Of a stretch of 64,000 nt of DNA, positions 16,191 to 62,568 are shown piece by piece (position 1 is the stretch's first letter; every line of letters starts with the position of its first letter). The position numbers and the translations under genes were made by a program. The DNA is taken from the IMG/VR virus record IMGVR_UViG_3300042147_000020, positions 62,001-126,000 of that record; one strand, given 5' to 3'. The notes under the pieces are model-generated. The model made no database searches. It was not told where the DNA came from and worked only from the letters and a program-made list of their open reading frames with translations.

Positions 16191-18194
16191 TCAGTTACGA
16201 CCCCAGTTGCCGGTGAACGGCGAGCTGAAGAGGCGGGAGTTCTGCTGGGTAGCGGTGCCGTAGTTGAAGAAGTTGCCCACGTTCTGATTAACAACCAGGT
16301 GGTCCAGAGCGTAACCGCCGCGCTGTACTTGACCTGCGTTGTCATCCAGACCTTTGGCCGGACGGACGTTCAGACCCGACTTCACGATCGCTTCCGACAG
16401 TGCGTCCAAGAACGTGTTGTCGAACGATACGCGACGAGCGAAGCCCTTGATCACGATGTCGCCAGAGATCAGTTGACGCAGGATTGCCTTGCGCTGATCC
16501 AGACGGACTTCCAGTGCGATGTTGGTGTTGCGGTGGGTGTCTTCCCACGCTTCAACCAGCTTCGGATTGGTTTTGCCAGCCAGGTTCAGGATTGCGACGT
16601 AGTCCAGCTCACGCAGGTCACGACGATTGCCTTCGCGATCGTAGTAGTAGCCCAGGTGGATGCGATCCTGATCGTCGTAGCAGACCGGAGCCGCTGCGTT
16701 GAACAGATTCTGGAAGTGACCCATGGTCAGGTTGTTCGCCGCTTGCAGGATTGCCATGCGGGCATCTTCGTTGCCGTTGGCGGCAGCGATGAAGGTTTGG
16801 TGAATCCAGCTCAGCTCACCAGCTTCTTCGATGTCCAGGGTGTAGATCAGCTTTGGAGCGATCAGCATGTTGATCAGTTGGCGCATTTCGTTGTCGCCGA
16901 ATTCGGCGCTACGAGTGTCCAGACGATCAGGCTTGGCTTGCGGATCACCGGTCAGGTTGATTTCGTAGCCCAGTGCGCCCAGGTCTTTCAGGTCAACGTC
17001 GTTGCCTTTACCTTTGTGGGTGCGGAAGGTACCGGACCAGTGCATGTTGCGGTTCAGACCCAGTGCAGTGCTGAGTGCCAACAGTTGCAGTTCCATGGTG
17101 ACGGCGTCAGTCATGGTGTCGATGGTGGTCATGACCAGACGAGGCTGGTACATTTGAGTAGCCATCGGCTGCTGCTGTTGGAACATGTTGCCCATCTGCG
17201 GCGCTTGCTGGAAACCGGCAGCGGCAGGTTGGTACATCAGATCAACGTACGCAGTAACGCGAGTGAGCTGACGGGACTGTTGCAGGCCGAACTGTGCATC
17301 GGTTTGGGTCTGTGCCGACATGCCGACAATGATGTCGCCACGAACTGGCAGGCCGACGATGTTCTCTTCATGTTGACGAGTGAAGTCAACACGAGCGATC
17401 ATTTGGTCGTTAGCACCAACTTCACCCAGGGTGAACGGTTCTTCAACCGAGCCCAGCTTGTTGTCCATGATGGTGTACACCGCCTGAGTGGCGTTGTGCA
17501 ACAGACGGTTGAAGCGGGTTTCGGTGAAGTCTTCGGTTTCGCTGTTGACGATCACGCAGCCGCCGTCGTGAACCAAGGCATTGATGCCGTAGCTGTCGAT
17601 GACGAACTTTTCCAGAACCGACCAGTACGACTTGTGCAGGTAGATGTCACCGGCAACAACGTCGACTTCGACCTGAGCACCGTTCAGGTTCAGGGTCGAG
17701 CTTTCCAGCGGAGAACCCGAGGATTCAATCATCAGGCTGTAGACCGCGATGTGGTTCTGACCGCCGACGGCTTCCTTGTAGCAGACCAGGATCGAGCTGT
17801 AGGTAACTGGGGTAGCGTTGTTGTCCAGAACCAGGAGACGGAAGTCAGCCTTCTGCTGTTCGTTCATGGTTTTGGCGATGCGGTCTTTCAGGCCTTGAAA
17901 GATGACGCTGACGTCTTCACCGGCCATGTTACGGCCAACTGGACGACGGTGGTTGGCGTTGATGTCGAGGACCGAACGGCCACGGCTACCGACGCGAGAA
18001 GAAGGCTGGTTCACGTTTGCACCTGCTTGAGCGAAAGACTGTTGTTGGGATTGTTGAGCTTGTGGTTGAACTTGTGGCTGCTCAGCCTGCGGAGCCGACT
18101 GAGATGCCTGGGGATTCAAACCTGCCGTACGCATGGCATCAGCCATTGCATTGTTCGGAGGAGTTTGTTCGTTACGGTTCTTCTGGACGGCCAT
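16191..18194 (-). CDS. chmA: Chimallin, major nuclear shell protein
   Basis: 667 aa, immediately upstream of beta'-N. Q-rich disordered N-terminus, aromatic C-terminal tail, strongly biased codons, early promoter. Confidence 0.85.
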   Translation of the reverse strand: MAVQKNRNEQTPPNNAMADAMRTAGLNPQASQSAPQAEQPQVQPQAQQSQQQSFAQAGANVNQPSSRVGSRGRSVLDINANHRRPVGRNMAGEDVSVIFQGLKDRIAKTMNEQQKADFRLLVLDNNATPVTYSSILVCYKEAVGGQNHIAVYSLMIESSGSPLESSTLNLNGAQVEVDVVAGDIYLHKSYWSVLEKFVIDSYGINALVHDGGCVIVNSETEDFTETRFNRLLHNATQAVYTIMDNKLGSVEEPFTLGEVGANDQMIARVDFTRQHEENIVGLPVRGDIIVGMSAQTQTDAQFGLQQSRQLTRVTAYVDLMYQPAAAGFQQAPQMGNMFQQQQPMATQMYQPRLVMTTIDTMTDAVTMELQLLALSTALGLNRNMHWSGTFRTHKGKGNDVDLKDLGALGYEINLTGDPQAKPDRLDTRSAEFGDNEMRQLINMLIAPKLIYTLDIEEAGELSWIHQTFIAAANGNEDARMAILQAANNLTMGHFQNLFNAAAPVCYDDQDRIHLGYYYDREGNRRDLRELDYVAILNLAGKTNPKLVEAWEDTHRNTNIALEVRLDQRKAILRQLISGDIVIKGFARRVSFDNTFLDALSEAIVKSGLNVRPAKGLDDNAGQVQRGGYALDHLVVNQNVGNFFNYGTATQQNSRLFSSPFTGNWGRN

Positions 18195-26326: not shown

Positions 26327-26683
26327 CTAACTGTACAAGTACAACCCCGTAGGCTTGATGTGTAAGGATATAGTCTCGTGGAACTTCCTTGGTGTAATGT
26401 ATCTTGCTATACGTTTACGCAGAAGATGATCACGATCCAAGAAGCGCAAGACCCCATGAAGCACATTGATAAAATGAGAGGAGTAGTGGTGTTCCACTCT
26501 GATCCCCGTGAGTTCTTCAATGGTCTCCGTTAGCCAGAGGTGTTCAATTAGCTCCACCAGTTCTTCGTAGTCTCCGAAGGCTTGGGTGAGGTATTGAAAC
26601 TTGACCATCCCTAGTGCCACATCAATGTCATCCCTGAGGTGCACTTGAATCTGCCGAAACCCCATAACGAATTGAAGCCGCAT
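26327..26683 (-). CDS. Hypothetical protein, paralogue of 25961..26323
   Basis: 118 aa, C-terminus LHIKPTGLYLYS. Confidence 0.75.
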   Translation of the reverse strand: MRLQFVMGFRQIQVHLRDDIDVALGMVKFQYLTQAFGDYEELVELIEHLWLTETIEELTGIRVEHHYSSHFINVLHGVLRFLDRDHLLRKRIARYITPRKFHETISLHIKPTGLYLYS

Positions 26684-26715
26684 GATTCTAACCTTTCTGA
26701 AGGTTTGTTCAATTG

Positions 26716-26733
26716 GATAATATAGGTCTCAAA
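26716..26733 (-). promoter_or_regulatory. Early promoter driving the small-gene array
   Basis: Minus strand TTTGAGACCTATATTATC. Confidence 0.7.
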
Positions 26734-26859
26734 CTAATTAGGATGACCCCTATGCCCTTCTACTCTATACTATCTGGGGTTGGTGTGAACTTATACACGG
26801 AGTCGCTCACAGAGGCTCACAGAGGGCATAAAGCCCCTCACCGGATAACCAGCAAGGGG

Positions 26860-27670
26860 CTCGATGCTTTACACTGCCGTCGGTCGGCTATCTGTGAGTG
26901 GAGTCAGGTCCCCTCTCGGCCAACCTAGTGGGGTCGGAGTAGCCAGGCGTGTTTTCCCACCGAGCGCCCCTGACGGCGACAAGGATTACGGCTAGAACGT
27001 ACGCACCCCTCCAAATGCCCGGCTCGGCTGGTAAAGGTAGGATTCCAATGCGTACGCGATTTACTTAAAGTAAACCCCCTAATGAATTACCCTGTGTCTG
27101 GCCAGACCAAAGGAGCAACACATTAGAGGCTGCACTTTACCAGACGGCTGCCATATAGAGGCTGCGCACCGGTTTGTTACAACTTGAGCCCTTCGCGGGG
27201 GCCCCGTACCTTTTGTCTTACTGGTCGAGTGCGAGTCAACCTATACGACTTCCTGTTATACGTCCGGTTATCCAAGGTTAGGTTGCGGACGCCCCACCCT
27301 TGCCGGGCAGAGATACGTGATCTCCCGCGCTCGCAGGAGACGACGATTTAAGACCCCTGATCCTACCGGCTCTCTGGACAGAGTAGTCACTAGGTTTTGA
27401 CCGTGGTCAGGGGAATTCAAGCTACCCTCTCTCTTAGAGCTGTCTACACTTACACAATGACTCGGGTTAGACCCAAGGTCGTGATTTGGGGTTTGGTCCT
27501 AAAAGTAGTAACCATTCCTACGACAGACAGGGGATTAGCCTGTGAGGGTACAACTTAGGGTGAGTGGGAAAGCCTAAACCTTCCAGACAGTAGTGTGACC
27601 CGACGGGTTGGAGTCACCTGTCCTAGTGGGTAGATAAAGTCCACTTGGCGTTACCGCTACACTCACTTGG
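26860..27670 (-). ncRNA. Candidate large structured non-coding RNA (~800 nt)
   Basis: No credible CDS over ~1 kb. Many hairpins, long-range helices and a crossing helix. Followed by a terminator-like hairpin at ~26825-26870. Confidence 0.6.
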
Positions 27671-27673
27671 GGT

Positions 27674-28126
27674 TTAACGACCGCACCAACTCTTCTTGGT
27701 GCCACCGTCGTACGCAACTGCAAGACCATTCTTGATCAGCAGTTGTGCGATGTCTATGTCATCCACCATCACTGTGGAGACGATGCGGAAGTACTTATCA
27801 CGTTCAGGGTTCACCAGTGTAATCTGGTTGGCTGCGTCGATGTACTTCTTCAGCAACAGTCGGGCTTGACGTGCTTTGGCTTTCTCAGCTTCTTGCTCAG
27901 CGACTACTTTACAAGTGCTACGCATTTCAGGAGTATCAATCCCAGCCAAGCGAATCCCGATGTTCTTTCCGAAGAGGTCAGGAACCTCAGGGATGTTCAC
28001 ATAGAGAGTATCGCCATCGTAAATCCTAACCACTTGGGACGACTTCAGGTTGAAGTCCCCGAAGGCAAAGACGCTGAATGAAGCCAGCATCAGTACCAAT
28101 GTTGCCACAATGTTTCTAACCTTCAT
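27674..28126 (-). CDS. Thermonuclease (SNase-like) with N-terminal signal peptide
   Basis: VVRIYDGDTL, IRLAGIDTPE and DKYFRI motifs. MKVRNIVATLVLMLASFSVFA is a Sec-type signal. Confidence 0.88.
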   Translation of the reverse strand: MKVRNIVATLVLMLASFSVFAFGDFNLKSSQVVRIYDGDTLYVNIPEVPDLFGKNIGIRLAGIDTPEMRSTCKVVAEQEAEKAKARQARLLLKKYIDAANQITLVNPERDKYFRIVSTVMVDDIDIAQLLIKNGLAVAYDGGTKKSWCGR

Positions 28127-28184
28127 ACTAAACTCCAAGGGATATAGGACATACTATCCTTGGGTCGTCTGTAGGCTTCTTAAA

Positions 28185-28381: not shown

Positions 28382-28510
28382 TGGGCATCCCCGACAAGCC
28401 TCGAACTTGCGACCTCCAGCGCTCCTCTCGTTAAACCATCTTCACTACTGGAGAGTTAATGATGGAACTTGAGGTTGGACTGGTGCTCTAACCGACTGAG
28501 CTACGGGGAC
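28382..28510 (-). ncRNA. tRNA-like RNA with a 58-nt insert in place of the anticodon loop
   Basis: Acceptor GTCCCCG/CGGGGAT, D arm GCTC/GAGC, T arm GCAAG-TTCGAGG-CTTGT. Stem CCAGT/GCTGG encloses 58 nt. Ends G-CCCA. Confidence 0.8.
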
Positions 28511-29060: not shown

Positions 29061-29735
29061 TCACTCGTGGGTTGTGGACAACTCACTGATGATGCACACT
29101 GACCCGTCTTCCACAGGAGTAGTATCGCTGTAGTCGACTTGATTGTAGACGCCCCCGTGGAACTGAAGAACACGATCGTTCCAAGAGCTGTCCAACCGTA
29201 GGGCTGGACAGATGGACTTACGACCTTGACACAGAACCGAAACGGATACGGAACCACCGGCGGTCACGTGAACACTGATCTTGAAAGGTACCCCAAGTGG
29301 GACATTCTCCAAGATGGTGGCGTTCATGATTACCGGATCGTCAAAACTAGCACGGAACCCGATCGTGAGCTTACCTTTGTTCCAGAACACCTTAAGCGGC
29401 GGGGTGTTCGAGTCTTTGACATGAAGCTGTGCTACCACAACCTTCTGGGCCCAGTTGACCTTGGTCAACGTCATTGTCTGGCGGCTCCAGTGATGGGCGG
29501 CACTTGACAAGGACCAGTAGTCAGCCTCTTTCCATTCCGTACGAGTACGGTGTACGCTTTTACTCGAAGCCCCCTTTGTGGGAGCAGTGAACTGAATGGA
29601 ACCGTCTTCGAGACGGAGCACGCAGCTTGCACAGTTGGCTAAAGCGTAGTCACCCATGACTTCTAGAGCCACTGGGTCAGTCGGAGAAACAGGTAGCGGT
29701 GTAGCGATGATGTACTGCGATATGTCGACAAACAT
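29061..29735 (-). CDS. Polysaccharide lyase family 7 (alginate lyase-like)
   Basis: ~224 aa. RTEWKE, AQLH and FHGGVYNQ correspond to the PL7 motifs R(S/T)ELR, QIH and YFKAGxYxQ. Confidence 0.8.
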   Translation of the reverse strand: MFVDISQYIIATPLPVSPTDPVALEVMGDYALANCASCVLRLEDGSIQFTAPTKGASSKSVHRTRTEWKEADYWSLSSAAHHWSRQTMTLTKVNWAQKVVVAQLHVKDSNTPPLKVFWNKGKLTIGFRASFDDPVIMNATILENVPLGVPFKISVHVTAGGSVSVSVLCQGRKSICPALRLDSSWNDRVLQFHGGVYNQVDYSDTTPVEDGSVCIISELSTTHE

Positions 29736-29780
29736 TCTGTCATCTCCAGTTAGGACCATAAGATGACGGAACGGGGAATG

Positions 29781-30476: not shown

Positions 30477-30585
30477 TTCAGGGACTTCCTAAAGATAGGG
30501 GAAATAAAGGATCGACATACCATAAACGGCATAAAACCGAGCCCGAAGGCTCGGTTTTACTAATTACACGAAGGAGACGTAAAAC

Positions 30586-30777: not shown

Positions 30778-31602
30778 TTAACGACGGTTGTAGTTGATGC
30801 GCTTAACTTCAAGTTCAGCGAACAAGTCCATCGGGTAATCGTCTGGCAGGTGAGCAGCAACTGTAGAGTTGGTGGTCTGCGGGTCGATCACAATGCTGAA
30901 CGGCAGCCGAACGAGGTTGCCCAGTGCACCGTTGATGATGATGTCGCGGTTGATCTTGGTCGCATTGCTGAATCGGGCCGCAACCTCTACACCGTCTTTG
31001 GTAACGATGCGCAGTAACTTGATCGAGTCGATGCTGTCAGTGGAGTCAATCGCTACACCACTGGCTCCGATCAGGCCGAACAGAGACTTGCGATCGCCGT
31101 CCTTCAACGGGAGACGGATCACCGAAGTGTCGCTCACGATGGTAGGTTCGTGTAGGATCTGCCAGTCTTCAGCCAGTTGATCCGATTGTGCCGGAGTCCA
31201 CGGGGTGAATACGTTCTGTGCAGTCTTCATGCCGACCCATGGTGCGAGTGTTGGACACTCGTTCTCACCGGGCTTGTAACCGACAGTTCCACAACCCACG
31301 TCGTAATGACCAGGCTGAACCATTACCAACCACATACCTTGACCATTCCACGAAGGACGCGTAACACGCTTGCCTTGCTTCAGGGCTTCGATGGCTAACC
31401 CGAAGGTCAGAGAATCGCACGGACGGTAGCTGTCCTCGAACACGGCTTTAGGCGACCAAGACTGGTGACCGTTGTCGTATTCCACAAGGTAGCCTTCATC
31501 GGCACCGTTTTCGTCAGCAGGTAACTCCCAGCCTTTGAGTTGGTTGTAGTCCAACCGAGACATCGGAGTTCCGATAACCTTCTTGGTACCAATGTAGTTC
31601 AT
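30778..31602 (-). CDS. tad2: DUF2829 / Tad2-family protein with N- and C-terminal extensions
   Basis: LTFGLAIEALKQGKRVTRPSWNGQGMWL...MKTAQNVFTPWTPAQSDQLAEDW is the DUF2829 signature. Confidence 0.8.
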   Translation of the reverse strand: MNYIGTKKVIGTPMSRLDYNQLKGWELPADENGADEGYLVEYDNGHQSWSPKAVFEDSYRPCDSLTFGLAIEALKQGKRVTRPSWNGQGMWLVMVQPGHYDVGCGTVGYKPGENECPTLAPWVGMKTAQNVFTPWTPAQSDQLAEDWQILHEPTIVSDTSVIRLPLKDGDRKSLFGLIGASGVAIDSTDSIDSIKLLRIVTKDGVEVAARFSNATKINRDIIINGALGNLVRLPFSIVIDPQTTNSTVAAHLPDDYPMDLFAELEVKRINYNRR

Positions 31603-32365: not shown

Positions 32366-32395
32366 AGTGTGATCCTAGTTTCTCTCTACGTTGAT

Positions 32396-32530
32396 TTTTT
32401 GAAGTTGACAGGGGAGAAGGGCGGCTCGTTTTATCTCCCGACTTGTACCCATGCACCTTAATGAACCACTGGGCGGCTCCTTTGAGTGCGGTTCGGCTGT
32501 ACCCTACCGTCTGTCAATCAACTTCAAAAA
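32396..32530 (-). ncRNA. Rod-like structured RNA directly after the tRNA-Asp CCA
   Basis: TTTTTGAAG/CTTCAAAAA, TTGACAG/CTGTCAA and AGGG/CCCT stacked helices. Confidence 0.5.
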
Positions 32531-32532
32531 AG

Positions 32533-32609
32533 TGGCGCCTCCGAACGGACTCGAACCGTCGACCCCTAGCGTGACAGGCTAGTGCTCTAACCAACTGAGC
32601 TACGGAAGC
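32533..32609 (-). tRNA. trnD: tRNA-Asp(GTC)
   Basis: Canonical cloverleaf, CT-GTC-AC loop, GCCA end. Confidence 0.95.
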
Positions 32610-32692
32610 AATGAAAAGTCCTGCTGGGCTTGCAGCGAGCTAACGGCGAACCGTTTGGTGCAAGAGCTGATCCAGCAGGGTGTTCTTGAAAT

Positions 32693-33126
32693 TGGCTCTG
32701 GCTTGCTTCCCGTTTGAATCGGGTCACTGAACTCGTTGTACGTAGGTACCCGCCAGACCGGTCGAAGACAAGGCTACTTCCTAAGACATCGCCAAGTCAC
32801 AATCTCGTTATCCTAAGCCACCCCCTAGGCACCTAATTGGATAACGTTACTACGTACGAGTTTGGGTGATCCTCCCGGCGTCTGAACGCCGAGTTAATGC
32901 ACAGTGAGCCGGATTTTCGTAACGCACAAAGGCAAACGACACGGCATGGCAAAGGATCATGTTCTACTCTACTTGCCCGTGGGTTAGAAGTCCTAGACTT
33001 ATTTTCCCTGATCACCGTAGATCAATGACGTAGCTCCGTGGCCTACTCCTTTCTAGGGGAGAGCAAACTTCGCGTTACAGGGTAAAACCATTACGTAGCC
33101 AGCAAGGGTCTCCGCAATGTTAAAAG
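32693..33126 (-). ncRNA. Structured RNA after tRNA-Gln (element B, up to ~430 nt)
   Basis: Shares ordered motifs with element A. Further helices AACTCG/CGAGTT, TACGTAG/CTACGTA, GTTATCC/GGATAAC and CGGCGT/ACGCCG. Confidence 0.5.
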
Positions 33127-33205
33127 TGGAAGAGGGAGATGGATTCGAACCATCGAATGTCGGGATCAAAACCCGATGCCTTTGGCCAGACTTGGCGATC
33201 CCTCT
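33127..33205 (-). tRNA. trnQ: tRNA-Gln(TTG)
   Basis: AGAGGGA/TCCCTCT acceptor, TT-TTG-AT loop, CCA end. Confidence 0.92.
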
Positions 33206-33209
33206 AGAA

Positions 33210-33351
33210 TTTTCTCACCTCGCCGCTAGGACGGCCCTAGCGACTTATTTTGCCGTGACCCCGGAGTTCAAGGTTGTCGACTCGGCTCGTTACGCCTTGC
33301 CCTACACGGTAAAACCCATGTGTAGGCACGAAGGCCAGCACATGTTAAAAG
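33210..33351 (-). ncRNA. Structured RNA after tRNA-Tyr (element A, ~140 nt)
   Basis: Hairpins CCTACAC/GTGTAGG and CGCTAGG/CCTAGCG, with motifs shared with element B. Confidence 0.55.
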
Positions 33352-33437
33352 TGGTGGGTGAGGTAGGATTCGAACCTACGAAGCACACGGCGTCAGATTT
33401 ACAATCTGATAACTTTGAACCACTTGTATACTCACCC
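33352..33437 (-). tRNA. trnY: tRNA-Tyr(GTA)
   Basis: GGGTGAG/CTCACCC acceptor, TT-GTA-AA loop, variable arm, ACCA end. Confidence 0.93.
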
Positions 33438-33444
33438 GATAAAG

Positions 33445-33566
33445 CTGCCGGTGTCGTGCATCGAAGCACTGCTAGTTCCCGGACCGCACTAGCTTTCCAT
33501 TAACGAAGGCTGACGCGTTGTCAGCTATGGCCCTCGGTAATGACTCCCCTGGAGTACACCTGCACA
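33445..33566 (-). ncRNA. Multibranch structured RNA (~120 nt) with a T-loop-like arm
   Basis: Closing helix GCAGGTGT/ACACCGGC. Arms ACTCC/GGAGT, GCTGAC/GTCAGC, GCTAGT/ACTAGC and GTGC-TTCGAT-GCAC. Confidence 0.5.
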
Positions 33567-33572
33567 ATAGAT

Positions 33573-33730
33573 TGCCCCTTGGTTGGATTCGAACCAACGA
33601 CCCTATCCGTTCAACCGACTCCGTTTAACGGGAGAGTTTAGTTACACCCGCTCAGTCAACTCCACCTTACGGTTCATGTTGCGAATACGAATGCTCTCGG
33701 ACTGTTCTACCAGACTGAACTACAAGAGGC
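33573..33730 (-). ncRNA. tRNA-like RNA with an 88-nt insert in place of the anticodon loop
   Basis: Acceptor CCTCTTG/CAAGGGG with a possible G-1:C73 pair, D arm GTTC/GAAC, T arm GTTGG-TTCGAAT-CCAAC. GTCCG/CGGAT encloses 33610-33697. Confidence 0.8.
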
Positions 33731-33747: not shown

Positions 33748-33848
33748 GGCCCCTAGGATCAGATTCGAACTGATGACCTTCACAGAGACACTACCTCAAT
33801 TCAGTAGGCGTGTCTCTACAGCGCTCTAACCATCTGAGCTACCCAGGG
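33748..33848 (-). ncRNA. tRNA-like RNA with a 42-nt extended anticodon arm
   Basis: Acceptor CCCTGGG/CCTAGGG, D arm GCTC/GAGC, T arm ATCAG-TTCGAAT-CTGAT. Arm AGAGACAC/GTGTCTCT plus CTAC/GTAG. Confidence 0.8.
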
Positions 33849-33856
33849 AGAAACCT

Positions 33857-34029: not shown

Positions 34030-34310
34030 TTAACCGCTACCCCGACCTACGGACTGCAATACAACAAGTGTGTCCCAAAAGGAAAAGAAAGAAAACCTTT
34101 GGGGGATGTGGTATGCAAGCACATCGTAGAGCACACTGTTGCCGGGTCACGCTCGACTAAACCGTAGTTTCACTGATACCCGTCGAACCAGTGTATCCCT
34201 GACCAGGGAAACCCCCCTAGAGCCGTGAAGAACTAGGTCGTGCTGGAGTCACTACTATCAGTCGATAACGCGTTAGTCTCTCAATAGATGCGCGGAGTAT
34301 GTAAAATAAT
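34030..34310 (-). ncRNA. Candidate structured RNA (~280 nt) at the head of the tRNA operon
   Basis: No ORF. Helices TCGACT/AGTCGA, CCCTG/CAGGG, GATAC/GTATC, GATGTG/CACATC and CCCAAAGG/CCTTTTGGG. Confidence 0.4.
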
Positions 34311-34353: not shown

Positions 34354-34366
34354 TGAAGGGAGGATG

Positions 34367-36486: not shown

Positions 36487-36678
36487 TCAGCCCAGCCCGA
36501 CACCAGAAGGACGGTTCTCGACCTGATGTTTCGCAGGATCGTAAACTACCTTCTCGTAACAGTTGTGCCAAGGTTTACCCAAACAGCAAGTGCAATGGAA
36601 CGGGGCTGCCACTGGATTGCTCAGGAGTTCAATGACTCCGCACTTGTCGCAAGCGTATTCCAGCAGCGTACCGCTCAT
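36487..36678 (-). CDS. Small Zn-ribbon protein
   Basis: CxxC (CDKC) and CxCC. Start overlaps the phuZ stop. Confidence 0.7.
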   Translation of the reverse strand: MSGTLLEYACDKCGVIELLSNPVAAPFHCTCCLGKPWHNCYEKVVYDPAKHQVENRPSGVGLG

Positions 36679-37640
36679 TACAACACCAGGCCGTCGTCAG
36701 TAGTGGCAGTGTCGCCCACCAGATCGACAGCAGCAGCACGGCCTTCACGACGACGAATGAAGTCGTCCAGAGTCTTCTGGAGTTTCTCGTAAGTAGCATC
36801 GAGATTCTCGGTGGACACTACGAGGTGAACTTCTTTGACGCCTTCGATAGCAGTCGTGAAGTAACCGGTGCACGGATATTCCGGGATCGGCTCTTCGAGA
36901 TGCTTCTGATCACGGTCGCTGTACAACGAAGCGATGGTGATCGGGTCCTTGATGACCTTGACGTCTTCCGGGTTGTAGAAGATGTCCAACATCGCCAGTT
37001 GTGCAGGCACGCTGGTCGAGTGGTTGAAACGCAACCAGTTGGCAACGTCTTTGGTATCCAGCTCGTCGTTCTGACGCGAAGTCAGGTAGCACAGGCTGGA
37101 GATGGCCAGGTTGATTTGACCGTCGACTACCGAACGAGTGCAGTCGCCGCCGTTGTGGCGGTAGTACATGACGATCGGGGTATCGACTTGCTTGGAGATG
37201 GCTGCCAGCGACTTGATGGTGTTCAAGGTGTTCTGTGCAGTGATGGTCGATTCCGAAGAACCAGCCAACAGCACAACTACCGAGTGACCGCGAGCTGCCA
37301 GTTCTTTTGCCAGCAACGGACCGATGACCGAACCCGAACCGCCGGACGCCGAGAAGACCACGATGTTGAAATCTTCGGGGGCTTGCTTCAGCAGGATTTG
37401 CTTGACCGCTGCGGAGATCTGCGCGTGGTTCTCTTTACGCACTTTACCGGAGCCATCAGTTTTGTCGAGGACGTAGATCGAGTCTTCGTTGGTGATACCG
37501 GCCAAGTTGGAACGGCTGGTGTCAATGAAGCTGACCAGAGGGGTCGCGAAGCCAGGAGCTGGCGGACGGTCGATGTAGGCCTTGACGATGTTCGTACCCA
37601 GACCACCACAGCCGTACAGACGCACTTTACCTTGTTCCAT
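36678..37640 (-). CDS. phuZ: PhuZ phage tubulin
   Basis: 320 aa. GCGGLG, tubulin signature SASGGSGS and C-terminal DDGLVL tail. Confidence 0.93.
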   Translation of the reverse strand: MEQGKVRLYGCGGLGTNIVKAYIDRPPAPGFATPLVSFIDTSRSNLAGITNEDSIYVLDKTDGSGKVRKENHAQISAAVKQILLKQAPEDFNIVVFSASGGSGSVIGPLLAKELAARGHSVVVLLAGSSESTITAQNTLNTIKSLAAISKQVDTPIVMYYRHNGGDCTRSVVDGQINLAISSLCYLTSRQNDELDTKDVANWLRFNHSTSVPAQLAMLDIFYNPEDVKVIKDPITIASLYSDRDQKHLEEPIPEYPCTGYFTTAIEGVKEVHLVVSTENLDATYEKLQKTLDDFIRRREGRAAAVDLVGDTATTDDGLVL

Positions 37641-61803: not shown

Positions 61804-62568
61804 TTACCAGCGGGCCGAAGGTGGCAACACCAAACCAGCAGGGCCAGTTTTCTTCCAACCGAAGTCAACGAAGATCGAACCGCTGCTCACGCCACCATTG
61901 TCTTCCATCGACACACCTTCGCCAACACCGCTTTCCATCGCTTCGATGTGATCACGGGTGAACTCGGCTTCCTCGAAGGATTCCAAAGAAGGAGAGTTCC
62001 ACTTACGAGCAATGTCAATACCAGGCTCGTTCACGTAGTCCCAGGTGACGATCGTACGGATGTGCTTGACCAGACGTCCGCCTTCGATCTTGTCGTCCGT
62101 CAGTGAGCGTACAGAGAAGCACACGCTTTCGTTCGGATTCTCCATCGACTCGCCCAACGCCTGACCTTTCGGACCAGATGGCTTGACGTGACCGATGACA
62201 GCAACCACACGATTACCTGACTTGTCTTTGATAGCGTCCTTCTCGATGCGAACATCTTTGAAGTGGCAGCAGACGTTATCTTCGTAGATCGTTGACACAC
62301 GACGCAGGAAGCTGCGCATGTCTTGACCCGGCAGTTGTTTGGGGTGACCATACTCGCCACGGCAAGCACCAGTCTCGATACGACGCATCAGGTTCGAGGA
62401 TTGCTCGAACAGTGACTGAGCCGATTTCAGCGGATAGAAAGCACCACCGCTGTTGTAGGTGTCCAAACCGCCCAGAACGAACTCGTAATAGCCGTCACTG
62501 TCTGCGGTCATCTTCCCTACTTTGTTTGTGCCACGCAACGCGACACAACCGTAACTTACACGTTCCAT
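61804..62568 (-). CDS. Prohead (head maturation) serine protease, phiKZ gp175-like
   Basis: GEYGHP, CFSVRSL and TWDYVNEPG catalytic motifs. C-terminal SLE/SME autocleavage motifs. Confidence 0.85.
   Translation of the reverse strand: MERVSYGCVALRGTNKVGKMTADSDGYYEFVLGGLDTYNSGGAFYPLKSAQSLFEQSSNLMRRIETGACRGEYGHPKQLPGQDMRSFLRRVSTIYEDNVCCHFKDVRIEKDAIKDKSGNRVVAVIGHVKPSGPKGQALGESMENPNESVCFSVRSLTDDKIEGGRLVKHIRTIVTWDYVNEPGIDIARKWNSPSLESFEEAEFTRDHIEAMESGVGEGVSMEDNGGVSSGSIFVDFGWKKTGPAGLVLPPSARW

Follow-up and report, generated by a model that had tools for sequence, protein, structure and literature searches.

Stable RNAs of obscure role have long been known from phage tRNA clusters, with rnaC and rnaD of phage T4 and the ROOL and GOLLD families as examples. 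T4 rnaD (species 2, 119 nt) and rnaC (species 1, 139 nt) are annotated in tandem directly 3′ of tRNA-Arg within the phage tRNA cluster and are cut as small stable RNAs from the tRNA precursor. The tRNA-processing enzymes RNase E, RNase Z or RNase P likewise free functional RNAs that lie 3′ of a tRNA, as with the Escherichia coli small RNA 3′ETS-leuZ and the tRNA-microRNA (miRNA) units of the herpesvirus MHV68. ROOL and GOLLD are non-coding RNAs of phages and prophages that lie in or next to tRNA islands and adopt complex pseudoknotted folds (PMC12286853). Here we describe a trailer RNA family of about 145–180 nt, named the T module, in a 64,000-nt stretch of DNA (the window; positions 62,001–126,000 of the 238.8-kb IMG/VR contig 3300042147_000020), in which one copy follows tRNA-Tyr and another tRNA-Gln on the minus strand. 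T is a previously undescribed, clade-restricted family of structured non-coding RNAs in the tRNA arrays of phiKZ-like jumbo phages, and it belongs with the stable RNAs of phage tRNA clusters rather than with guide RNAs.

By position, T is like rnaD and rnaC, its closest architectural precedent. However, rnaC ends in a tRNA-like T arm that is missing from T, host and phage lineage differ, and the covariance model R1 (introduced below), run with filters off against T4 positions 69000–75000, returned no meaningful match at rnaC or rnaD and thus no homology. T is phage-encoded and adjoins tRNA genes, as ROOL and GOLLD do, but these span 500–800 nt or more and self-assemble into cages, whereas T measures 146–180 nt and has no Rfam match at E ≤ 10. 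With 3′ETS-leuZ and the MHV68 units T would have in common the principle of release by tRNA processing; those RNAs, short or simple hairpins, act by base pairing (as a sponge or as miRNAs), whereas T is a large covarying fold for which no complementary target was found in the sequences searched (below).

Copy 1 (146 nt) begins one base past the CCA of tRNA-Tyr and reaches the first base of tRNA-Gln, and copy 2 (168 nt) begins one base past the CCA of tRNA-Gln. The two are laid out alike, with CTTTTAACAT leading into a hairpin, (G)GGTTTTACC placed before the inner domain, and AAAATAAGTC before another hairpin; as longer common strings these read CUUUUAACAU at the start, (G)GGUUUUACC after the hairpin, AAAAUAAGUC past the inner domain and GGCRAG after the second hairpin. 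The exact 10- to 13-mers pointed out in an initial annotation of this DNA occur in the window only at the two trailers. That annotation had correctly placed both directly behind the CCA ends on the minus strand, as sequence and ARAGORN agree; its start holds, while its lower bound of 32985 cuts copy 2, which runs to ∼32959, short by ∼25 nt. Neither ARAGORN nor the Rfam tRNA model detected a tRNA within 33206–33351 or 32959–33126 (no T-loop cloverleaf). T is not coding, since the copies differ by 1- and 2-nt indels and the only long open reading frame (ORF) across the region (33117–33503, plus strand) runs antisense through two tRNA genes. The features of the locus are as follows.

33352–33437, minus strand: tRNA-Tyr (GTA) with encoded CCA, its 3′ end defining the 5′ end of T copy 1 (ARAGORN; Rfam tRNA model, 54.7 bits).
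33206–33351, minus strand: T copy 1 (type a), recovered by R1 (55.7 bits, E 1e-14), whose training set excluded it.
33351–33344, minus strand: copy 1, 5′ single strand CUUUUAAC.
33344–33339 with 33322–33317, minus strand: copy 1, helix P1.
33314–33305 with 33257–33248, minus strand: copy 1, helix P2.
33251–33243, minus strand: copy 1, junction AAAAUAAGU.
33241–33236 with 33230–33225, minus strand: copy 1, helix P3.
33224–33218, minus strand: copy 1, GGCGAGG.
33127–33205, minus strand: tRNA-Gln (TTG; ARAGORN; Rfam tRNA model, 56.5 bits).
32959–33126, minus strand: T copy 2 (type b; R1, 166 bits; covariation).
33126–33119, minus strand: copy 2, 5′ CUUUUAAC.
33119–33113 with 33095–33089, minus strand: copy 2, P1.
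33108–33102, minus strand: copy 2, P1 loop CCCUUGC.
33087–33078 with 33010–33002, minus strand: copy 2, P2.
33005–32997, minus strand: copy 2, AAAAUAAGU.
32977–32972, minus strand: copy 2, GGCAAG, putative pseudoknot partner of the P1 loop.
32533–32609, minus strand: tRNA-Asp (GTC), whose RNase P site is the first one past copy 2 and the blocks X, Y and Z described below (ARAGORN; Rfam tRNA model, 68 bits).

Homologues were sought by pattern scans of IMG/VR, JGI metagenomes and GTDB genomes (one per species), with each match checked by covariance model. True homologues were confined to loci L005, L009 (the contig of the window), L010/L063, L011/L019, L013/L024/L027, L016 and L022/L023, where L063 is redundant with L010 and L019 with L011; these yielded 11 distinct T sequences from approximately seven related ∼240-kb phage contigs and metagenome fragments. 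All other pattern matches, including loci in bacterial genomes, failed the covariance model. The copies fall into four types, split by their inner domain.

Type a: window copy 1, L011 copy 1 and L016.
Type b: window copy 2, L005, L022 and L023.
Type c: L010, L011 copy 2 and L013 copy 2.
Type d: L013:234–382.

When built from type b and c copies only, the covariance model (R1) matched type a and d copies over their full length (34–56 bits, E 1e-8 to 1e-14), with matches confined to the tRNA strand. Because no type a copy entered its training, the full-length recovery of copy 1 shows independently that the two window copies are paralogues, as first proposed; a covariance-model search of the kind suggested in the initial annotation has returned both further homologues and covariation. 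R1 gave no match in the tRNA arrays of Psa21, HPP-Temi, FLC9, FLC1-1B, D6 or pEa_SNUABM_9, and blastn of the T region against GenBank phages and plasmids returned tRNAs only. Rfam searches of the window and six related loci, at gathering and E-value thresholds, gave tRNAs and weak chance matches only, and inside 32955–33354 no non-tRNA family was matched at E ≤ 10 (tracrRNA, CRISPR-DR, ribozymes, ENE, ROOL and GOLLD included).

Alignment of the 11 copies exhibited three covarying helices, P1, P2 and P3. Standard pairs occupy 92.9% of helix cells, as compared to 40–56% when the 3′ partners are slid by 1–3 columns; both sides have changed in 12 of 22 pairs, and the observed covariation score was matched by none of 500 shuffles. 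A MAFFT alignment of six type b and c copies, unfitted to any model, behaved likewise (93% paired, 43–54% when slid). From the 5′ end, the fold consists of single-stranded CUUUUAAC, the P1 hairpin, P2 enclosing the variable inner domain, the invariant junction AAAAUAAGU, P3 and GCRAGG. P1 directly follows CUUUUAAC, and its pairs switch among UU/AA, CC/GG and AU/UA, with changes on both sides in five of seven pairs and 92% of cells paired; its loop, GACCCTTGCTGGC, is invariant in the 7 of 11 copies that make up types b and c. P2 is a long-range helix of UUUUACCNUG with CANGGAAAA, i.e., UUUU(A)CCNUG with CANGG(N)AAAA, and corresponds to the GTTTTA...AAAAT helix for which a compensatory change had been reported from the two window copies: G33307–C33255 in copy 1 is C33080–G33008 in copy 2. 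Across the 11 homologues this N–N pair is U-A, C-G, G-C or U-G and changes independently within types b and c, while in type d the terminal G-C of P2 is flipped to A-U. P3, which follows AAAAUAAGU, displays double changes in five of six pairs. Since G-U cells outnumber A-C cells in the helices (18 versus 6) and R1 matches and tRNAs all lie on one strand, the folded strand, as read from the alignment, is the tRNA strand.

Four single-stranded motifs are invariant beside these freely covarying helices. The GCRAGG(G) motif after P3 complements the P1 loop, which reads CCCUUGC in types b and c, CCUUCG in type a and CCCUAG in type d, with 86% of cells paired as compared to 40–52% when slid, consistent with a plausible pseudoknot. 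A local hairpin, GUUUUAC-CNU-GURRRRC, can form from the 5′ strand of P2 (33305–33316 and 33078–33089, minus strand) in nearly all copies; the purines facing its U's vary only between A and G, and RNAalifold on raw MAFFT alignments chose this hairpin over P2. It may be a co-transcriptional folding intermediate or a conformational switch. Folding of the single sequences to minimum free energy (MFE) gave no useful signal (copy 1, z = −2.4; copy 2, z = 0.06), and the covarying P2 appears in neither MFE fold.

The window encodes chimallin, PhuZ, a divergent family-B DNA polymerase with its SH3 partner, split RNA polymerase beta/beta′ pieces, and the virion proteins phiKZ gp28, gp29, tail-tube and internal-head proteins (Pfam scan of window ORFs). 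Because of these genes, the source, by its gene content, is an uncultured nucleus-forming jumbo phage of the phiKZ (chimallin/PhuZ) type. No close GenBank relative was found, as megablast of 24 kb returned tRNA-sized fragments only, and the nearest tRNA matches (blastn) were to phages of Pseudomonas, Ralstonia and Burkholderia.

16191–18194: chimallin.
36678–37640: PhuZ-type tubulin.

The start of T lies always 0–1 nt past the encoded CCA of tRNA-Tyr or tRNA-Gln, and T is absent from otherwise near-identical arrays. Among loci related by PhuZ (identity to the window 92% for L064 and 67% for L066), L064, L065 and L066 have arrays but no T; L065 also lacks tRNA-Tyr and tRNA-Gln. Comparison of the junctions illustrates the precision of this presence and absence.

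L010: tRNA-Tyr CCA-TTTCT-tRNA-Gln (no T).
Window: CCA-[T copy 1]-TTCT-tRNA-Gln.
L066: CCA-TTTAC|GATCC, with the X module directly after (no T).
L064: CCA-TTTCAC|GATCC (no T).
L016: CCA-[T]-TTAC|GATCC.

T is, as these junctions read, an optional, precisely bounded cassette placed exactly after CCA. The tRNAs ahead of T in L005 (13690–13775) and L022 (upstream of 2766) are degenerate tRNA-Tyr-like genes, not called by ARAGORN, in which the anticodon loop carries GTA and the acceptor stem is imperfect.

Downstream of copy 2 lie three further conserved non-coding blocks, with a fourth upstream of tRNA-Tyr, and all four assort independently among relatives.

32864–32958, minus strand: X module, directly adjoining copy 2; a closing helix (GAUCC/GGAUC) and, preceded by (C/U)UUAAC, an inner hairpin, with ACCC behind it.
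32694–32863, minus strand: Y module (CUCGUA...GGGAAGCAAGCC), an optional structured block (region comparison, by eye).
32620–32679, minus strand: Z block (CCUGCUGG...CCCAGCAGG), at the place where relatives carry a 67-aa ORF (MLESIEE...).
∼33438–33572, minus strand: U block, upstream of tRNA-Tyr, conserved in L010, L011, L064, L065 and L066.

X follows the pattern GAUCC...UUAAC-hairpin-GGAUCACCC; RNAalifold failed to give a fold for it, and by eye its closing helix covaries (GAUCC/GGAUC; GGUUCC/GGGAUC in L010; GGUCU/AGACC in L005:13423–13519). Mimicry of 16S ribosomal RNA by X was considered, as GGAUCACC resembles the 16S 3′ end, and rejected, since one copy reads AGACCACC with a compensating 5′ strand, so that the helix rather than the sequence matters. 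Y is present in the window, L010, L011, L005, L064 and L066, and absent from L013, L016, L022 and L065.

On balance, we consider it somewhat probable that T is a new family of structured RNAs in a narrow phiKZ-like clade, cotranscribed with tRNAs, released by tRNA processing and acting in trans through its folded core. The minus strand of the array would be transcribed as one polycistronic precursor carrying T and the tRNAs, because a strong minus-strand terminator lies upstream of the array at 34354–34333 and a terminator scan found none on that strand from there to 28091; a terminator-like hairpin seen by eye near 30550 lies well downstream of both T copies. Maturation of the upstream tRNA 3′ end would free the 5′ end of T, i.e., at the CCA of tRNA-Tyr for copy 1 and of tRNA-Gln for copy 2. 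A cut at CCAC|UUUU would fit RNase E, which is described (PMC5222698) as preferring a U two bases downstream of the cut, and exonucleases would trim back to CCA. RNase P cleavage at tRNA-Gln would set the 3′ end of copy 1 and liberate a discrete 146-nt RNA, whereas for copy 2 the first such boundary is at tRNA-Asp (32609), and it may stay joined to X, Y and Z in an RNA of up to ∼517 nt. Release by tRNA processing, as originally suggested, is therefore plausible. Invariant single-stranded motifs beside covarying helices imply a specific tertiary fold or a protein-binding surface, which favors a stable trans-acting RNA; the product would work through its folded, sequence-invariant core, most likely as a protein-binding RNA and not as a base-pairing guide, although our confidence in any particular partner is low. 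T would then serve an accessory function, unneeded for tRNA maturation.

Several points weigh against this reading. The 11-copy alignment was fitted to the structure of the model itself, and because T is carried by approximately seven source genomes of one clade, shared ancestry inflates some of the covariation counts. The pseudoknot columns hardly vary, their covariation being no better than that of shuffles, so that they offer conserved complementarity only, and the local hairpin GUUUUAC/GURRRRC competes with P2 and is predicted to be roughly as stable, within ∼2.5 kcal/mol of it. Expression, RNA ends and stability of T are all inferred, and as neither a protein partner nor another hint of function turned up, a protein-binding, trans-acting role is a guess drawn from the pattern of conservation. 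Copy 2, moreover, may be not an independent RNA but the 5′ domain of a larger T-X-Y-Z transcript.

Two of several possible alternatives are tentative but merit the most weight. The first, that T is a cis-acting element of the tRNA precursor (a folding insulator, processing platform or stability element) with no role once excised, we regard as unlikely. In its favor, every T is joined to the 3′ end of a tRNA and has an invariant U-rich tract after the CCA, and T-less junctions are likewise U-rich past CCA. P1 lies between two U tracts, an A tract occurs farther downstream, and a tRNA-type processing site is adjacent, an arrangement that provides a lead, and a lead only, to the ENE/MALAT1 triple-helix stability elements, which adjoin the tRNA-like mascRNA; in such an ENE-like variant, covered by the same low estimate, the 5′ UUUU would join the P2 UUUU/AAAA in a U.A-U triplex. 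However, the order relative to the tRNA is reversed, T lacks a lower stem and an Rfam ENE match, and its tracts measure 4 nt and are interrupted in two copies, L016 and L011 copy 1, where the A tract reads UAAUAAUAAGU, which weakens a strict triplex. The ENE-type U/A strings are invariant in 9 of 11 copies, and invariant columns cannot reveal base triples. Near-identical tRNA-Tyr genes without T exist in L064, L066 and L010, so that T is dispensable for production of that tRNA, which argues against a purely cis-acting processing role; a mere spacer, in addition, would have no need of ∼150 nt, of three covarying helices or of four single-stranded motifs kept invariant.

The second is a similarly improbable reading, in which copy 2 is the 5′ domain of a composite T-X-Y-Z RNA of ∼517 nt between tRNA-Gln and tRNA-Asp, resembling ROOL and GOLLD, and copy 1 is a duplicated fragment. 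Neither a tRNA nor a terminator separates T, X, Y and Z, for which reason X may be part of the same processed RNA as copy 2; X and Y are conserved too, with helices that look compensated by eye, and ROOL and GOLLD are precedents for phage RNAs near tRNA islands (PMC12286853). However, the modules assort independently, as T-X only (L013), T-X followed by an ORF (L016, L022) and X-Y without T (L064, L066); copy 1 and its L011 and L013 orthologues stand alone between two tRNAs, and Rfam gave no ROOL or GOLLD match.

A more specific proposal, which we hold with less confidence still, is that T is a new class of virus-encoded RNA, either an effector or a decoy (a role that the initial annotation had also raised), released by host tRNA enzymes and passed as a cassette from phage to phage, whose core docks a host factor such as a tRNA-targeting defence nuclease, an RNA chaperone or an RNase. 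The docking core would comprise CUUUUAAC, GG-UUUUACC, GG-AAAAUAAGU, GCRAGG and the putative pseudoknot. The array also carries a Tad2-like anti-Thoeris gene and tRNAs for Tyr, Asn, Asp and Arg, the kinds attacked by anticodon nucleases. If this proposal were true, T would be an RNA-level counter-defence gene.

It is quite unlikely that T is a selfish or neutral insertion that spreads among tRNA 3′ ends by recombination or homing and has no phage function. Its precise presence or absence at CCA^TTT, the several paralogous types per genome and the HNH endonuclease genes in tRNA arrays of other jumbo phages would suit such an element, but the helices of T are under purifying selection, and compensatory changes that reflect selection on RNA structure, superfluous for a DNA-level parasite, argue against one without function; T also has no terminal inverted repeats, and the scanned ORFs of this array include no endonuclease gene. 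That T is a ribozyme cleaving itself off exactly behind CCA, as ribozymes like that of hepatitis delta virus (HDV) cut at their own 5′ edge, and so gives the phage tRNA 3′ ends independent of the host, is very improbable: the invariant CCA junction, the compact, possibly pseudoknotted fold and the invariant single-stranded nucleotides are outweighed by the lack of any Rfam ribozyme match in T (HDV-like, hatchet, pistol, twister or hammerhead), a strand topology unlike the HDV-like nested double pseudoknot, a P1 that does not start at +1, and the T-less tRNAs of sister phages.

The weakest reading, largely refuted, is that of the initial annotation, in which T is a guide-like RNA (single guide RNA [sgRNA], trans-activating CRISPR RNA [tracrRNA] or omega-RNA) or a mimic of CRISPR repeats that an RNA-guided nuclease would load or be blocked by. 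In its favor are the string GUUUUA...AAAAUAAG(U)C(U)AGG, closely followed by a hairpin, like the repeat:anti-repeat junction and nexus of the Streptococcus pyogenes sgRNA, and the known concept of phage-encoded RNA anti-CRISPRs. In T, however, the two halves pair in cis, GTTTTA with AAAAT at the base of the helix that encloses the variable structured domain. The 26–28 largely different nt are not a free guide but form the covarying P1 hairpin, with its conserved loop, and of the six ordered motifs cited, four are homologous, while the structural alignment places TGCTGGC and TAACG at positions that are not homologous between the copies, these two being coincidental. The P1 segment, inner domain and tail had no target-like match in GenBank phages, PLSDB plasmids or 840 kb of related sequence, the outcome of the target search proposed along with the guide reading; complements of the P1 loop with up to two mismatches numbered six in the window against ∼1.3 expected, one being T itself and the others imperfect, scattered and none conserved. 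The 39 window ORFs scanned against Pfam encode phiKZ-type replication, transcription and virion proteins together with Tad2-like, staphylococcal nuclease (SNase), alginate lyase and GNAT domains; none carries a RuvC/HNH-type effector, Cas9, IscB, TnpB or reverse-transcriptase domain, in agreement with the earlier remark that the window holds no Cas9, IscB or TnpB. T exhibits none of the tested defining features of a tracrRNA or sgRNA (nuclease gene and CRISPR array in the 64-kb window, free guide, curated-model match), and the only CRISPR-repeat match in Rfam falls outside T, at 34072–34091 (E 9.4). Repeats of the GTTTTA type are a feature of type II-A systems in Firmicutes, whereas the tRNA matches point to phages of Pseudomonas, Ralstonia and Burkholderia, and since DNA-targeting CRISPR is largely ineffective against nucleus-forming phages, a Cas9 decoy would be of little benefit. 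Because P1 is paired, P2 forms in cis, Rfam, effector and target searches gave no match and two motifs are non-homologous, the sgRNA resemblance is a coincidence of short strings.

Resemblances by eye to RNase P RNA, signal recognition particle RNA and transfer-messenger RNA had no Rfam or ARAGORN support and were set aside, as were CsrA/RsmA-type GGA loops, which are not conserved across T types.

The minus-strand array as a whole spans ∼33850 down to 28386 (ARAGORN, Rfam). Within it, tRNA-like genes with long anticodon-arm insertions occur on the minus strand at ∼33748–33849 (∼25 nt inserted), 33573–33730 (∼85 nt) and 28386–28510 (∼50 nt). All three were missed by ARAGORN, and the last scores 45 bits against the Rfam tRNA model with its insertion. 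The inserted segments, which may be introns or expansions, lack the length of a group I intron; L011 (7739–7866) and L016 (63–191) have genes of a similar kind. An Rfam match to YrlA (23.6 bits) bridges two neighbouring tRNA-like genes and was rejected as chance. Three minus-strand protein genes of the array were assigned by Pfam.

30778–31602, minus strand: Tad2-like (Thoeris anti-defence 2) domain protein (E 7.5e-23).
29061–29759, minus strand: alginate lyase family protein (E 6.7e-40).
27674–28138, minus strand: staphylococcal-nuclease-like protein.

As a group, these genes point to an accessory or counter-defence island in the array region.

Two further non-coding elements were observed on the minus strand. 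A structured RNA of ∼135 nt, the D module (32395–32532), directly follows the CCA of tRNA-Asp and is 81–84% identical in the GenBank jumbo phages Psa21, D6 and HPP-Temi (Pseudomonas) and pEa_SNUABM_9 (Erwinia), where it likewise always lies behind a tRNA and, in pEa_SNUABM_9, is annotated as part of a hypothetical protein. Its consensus fold has 31 pairs, seven with double changes, and invariant loops AAAGGAGCCGCCC, GGGUGCAUGGGUACAAGU and GAUAAAACGAGCCGCC; no Rfam match was found. The second is a block of ∼1 kb at 26690–27690, between the SNase-like ORF and ORF 26327–26683, which contains no minus-strand ORF of at least 60 aa. Conserved at 75–85% identity in every relative compared, it consists of a conserved 5′ ∼270 nt, central 44 nt and 3′ ∼140 nt around variable middles, and in L022 it starts 28 nt past the last tRNA of the array, tRNA-Leu. 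RNAalifold on its 5′ 260 nt gave 65 pairs, 22 with double changes, and the block had no Rfam match at E ≤ 10 and no GenBank phage match. A weak R1 match within it (26839–26866, minus strand; 8.8 bits, E 0.9) is a hairpin whose loop, GCCCCUUGCUGGU, resembles the T P1 loop GACCCUUGCUGGC. We regard the block as a candidate giant non-coding RNA, in a setting like that of ROOL and GOLLD; it may outrank T in interest.

Nucleus-forming jumbo phages thus carry a whole set of RNAs, comprising T, X, Y, Z, U, D and the ∼1-kb block, none of which is in Rfam; these act like exchangeable modules, and every one shows covariation or a conserved structure. The present analysis also corrects a tempting CRISPR-like reading of the trailers. 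With its small, clean and well-supported fold, T is suited to structure determination and pull-downs, and sister phages that differ only by the presence or absence of T constitute a natural genetic test of the role of a tRNA-linked phage RNA.

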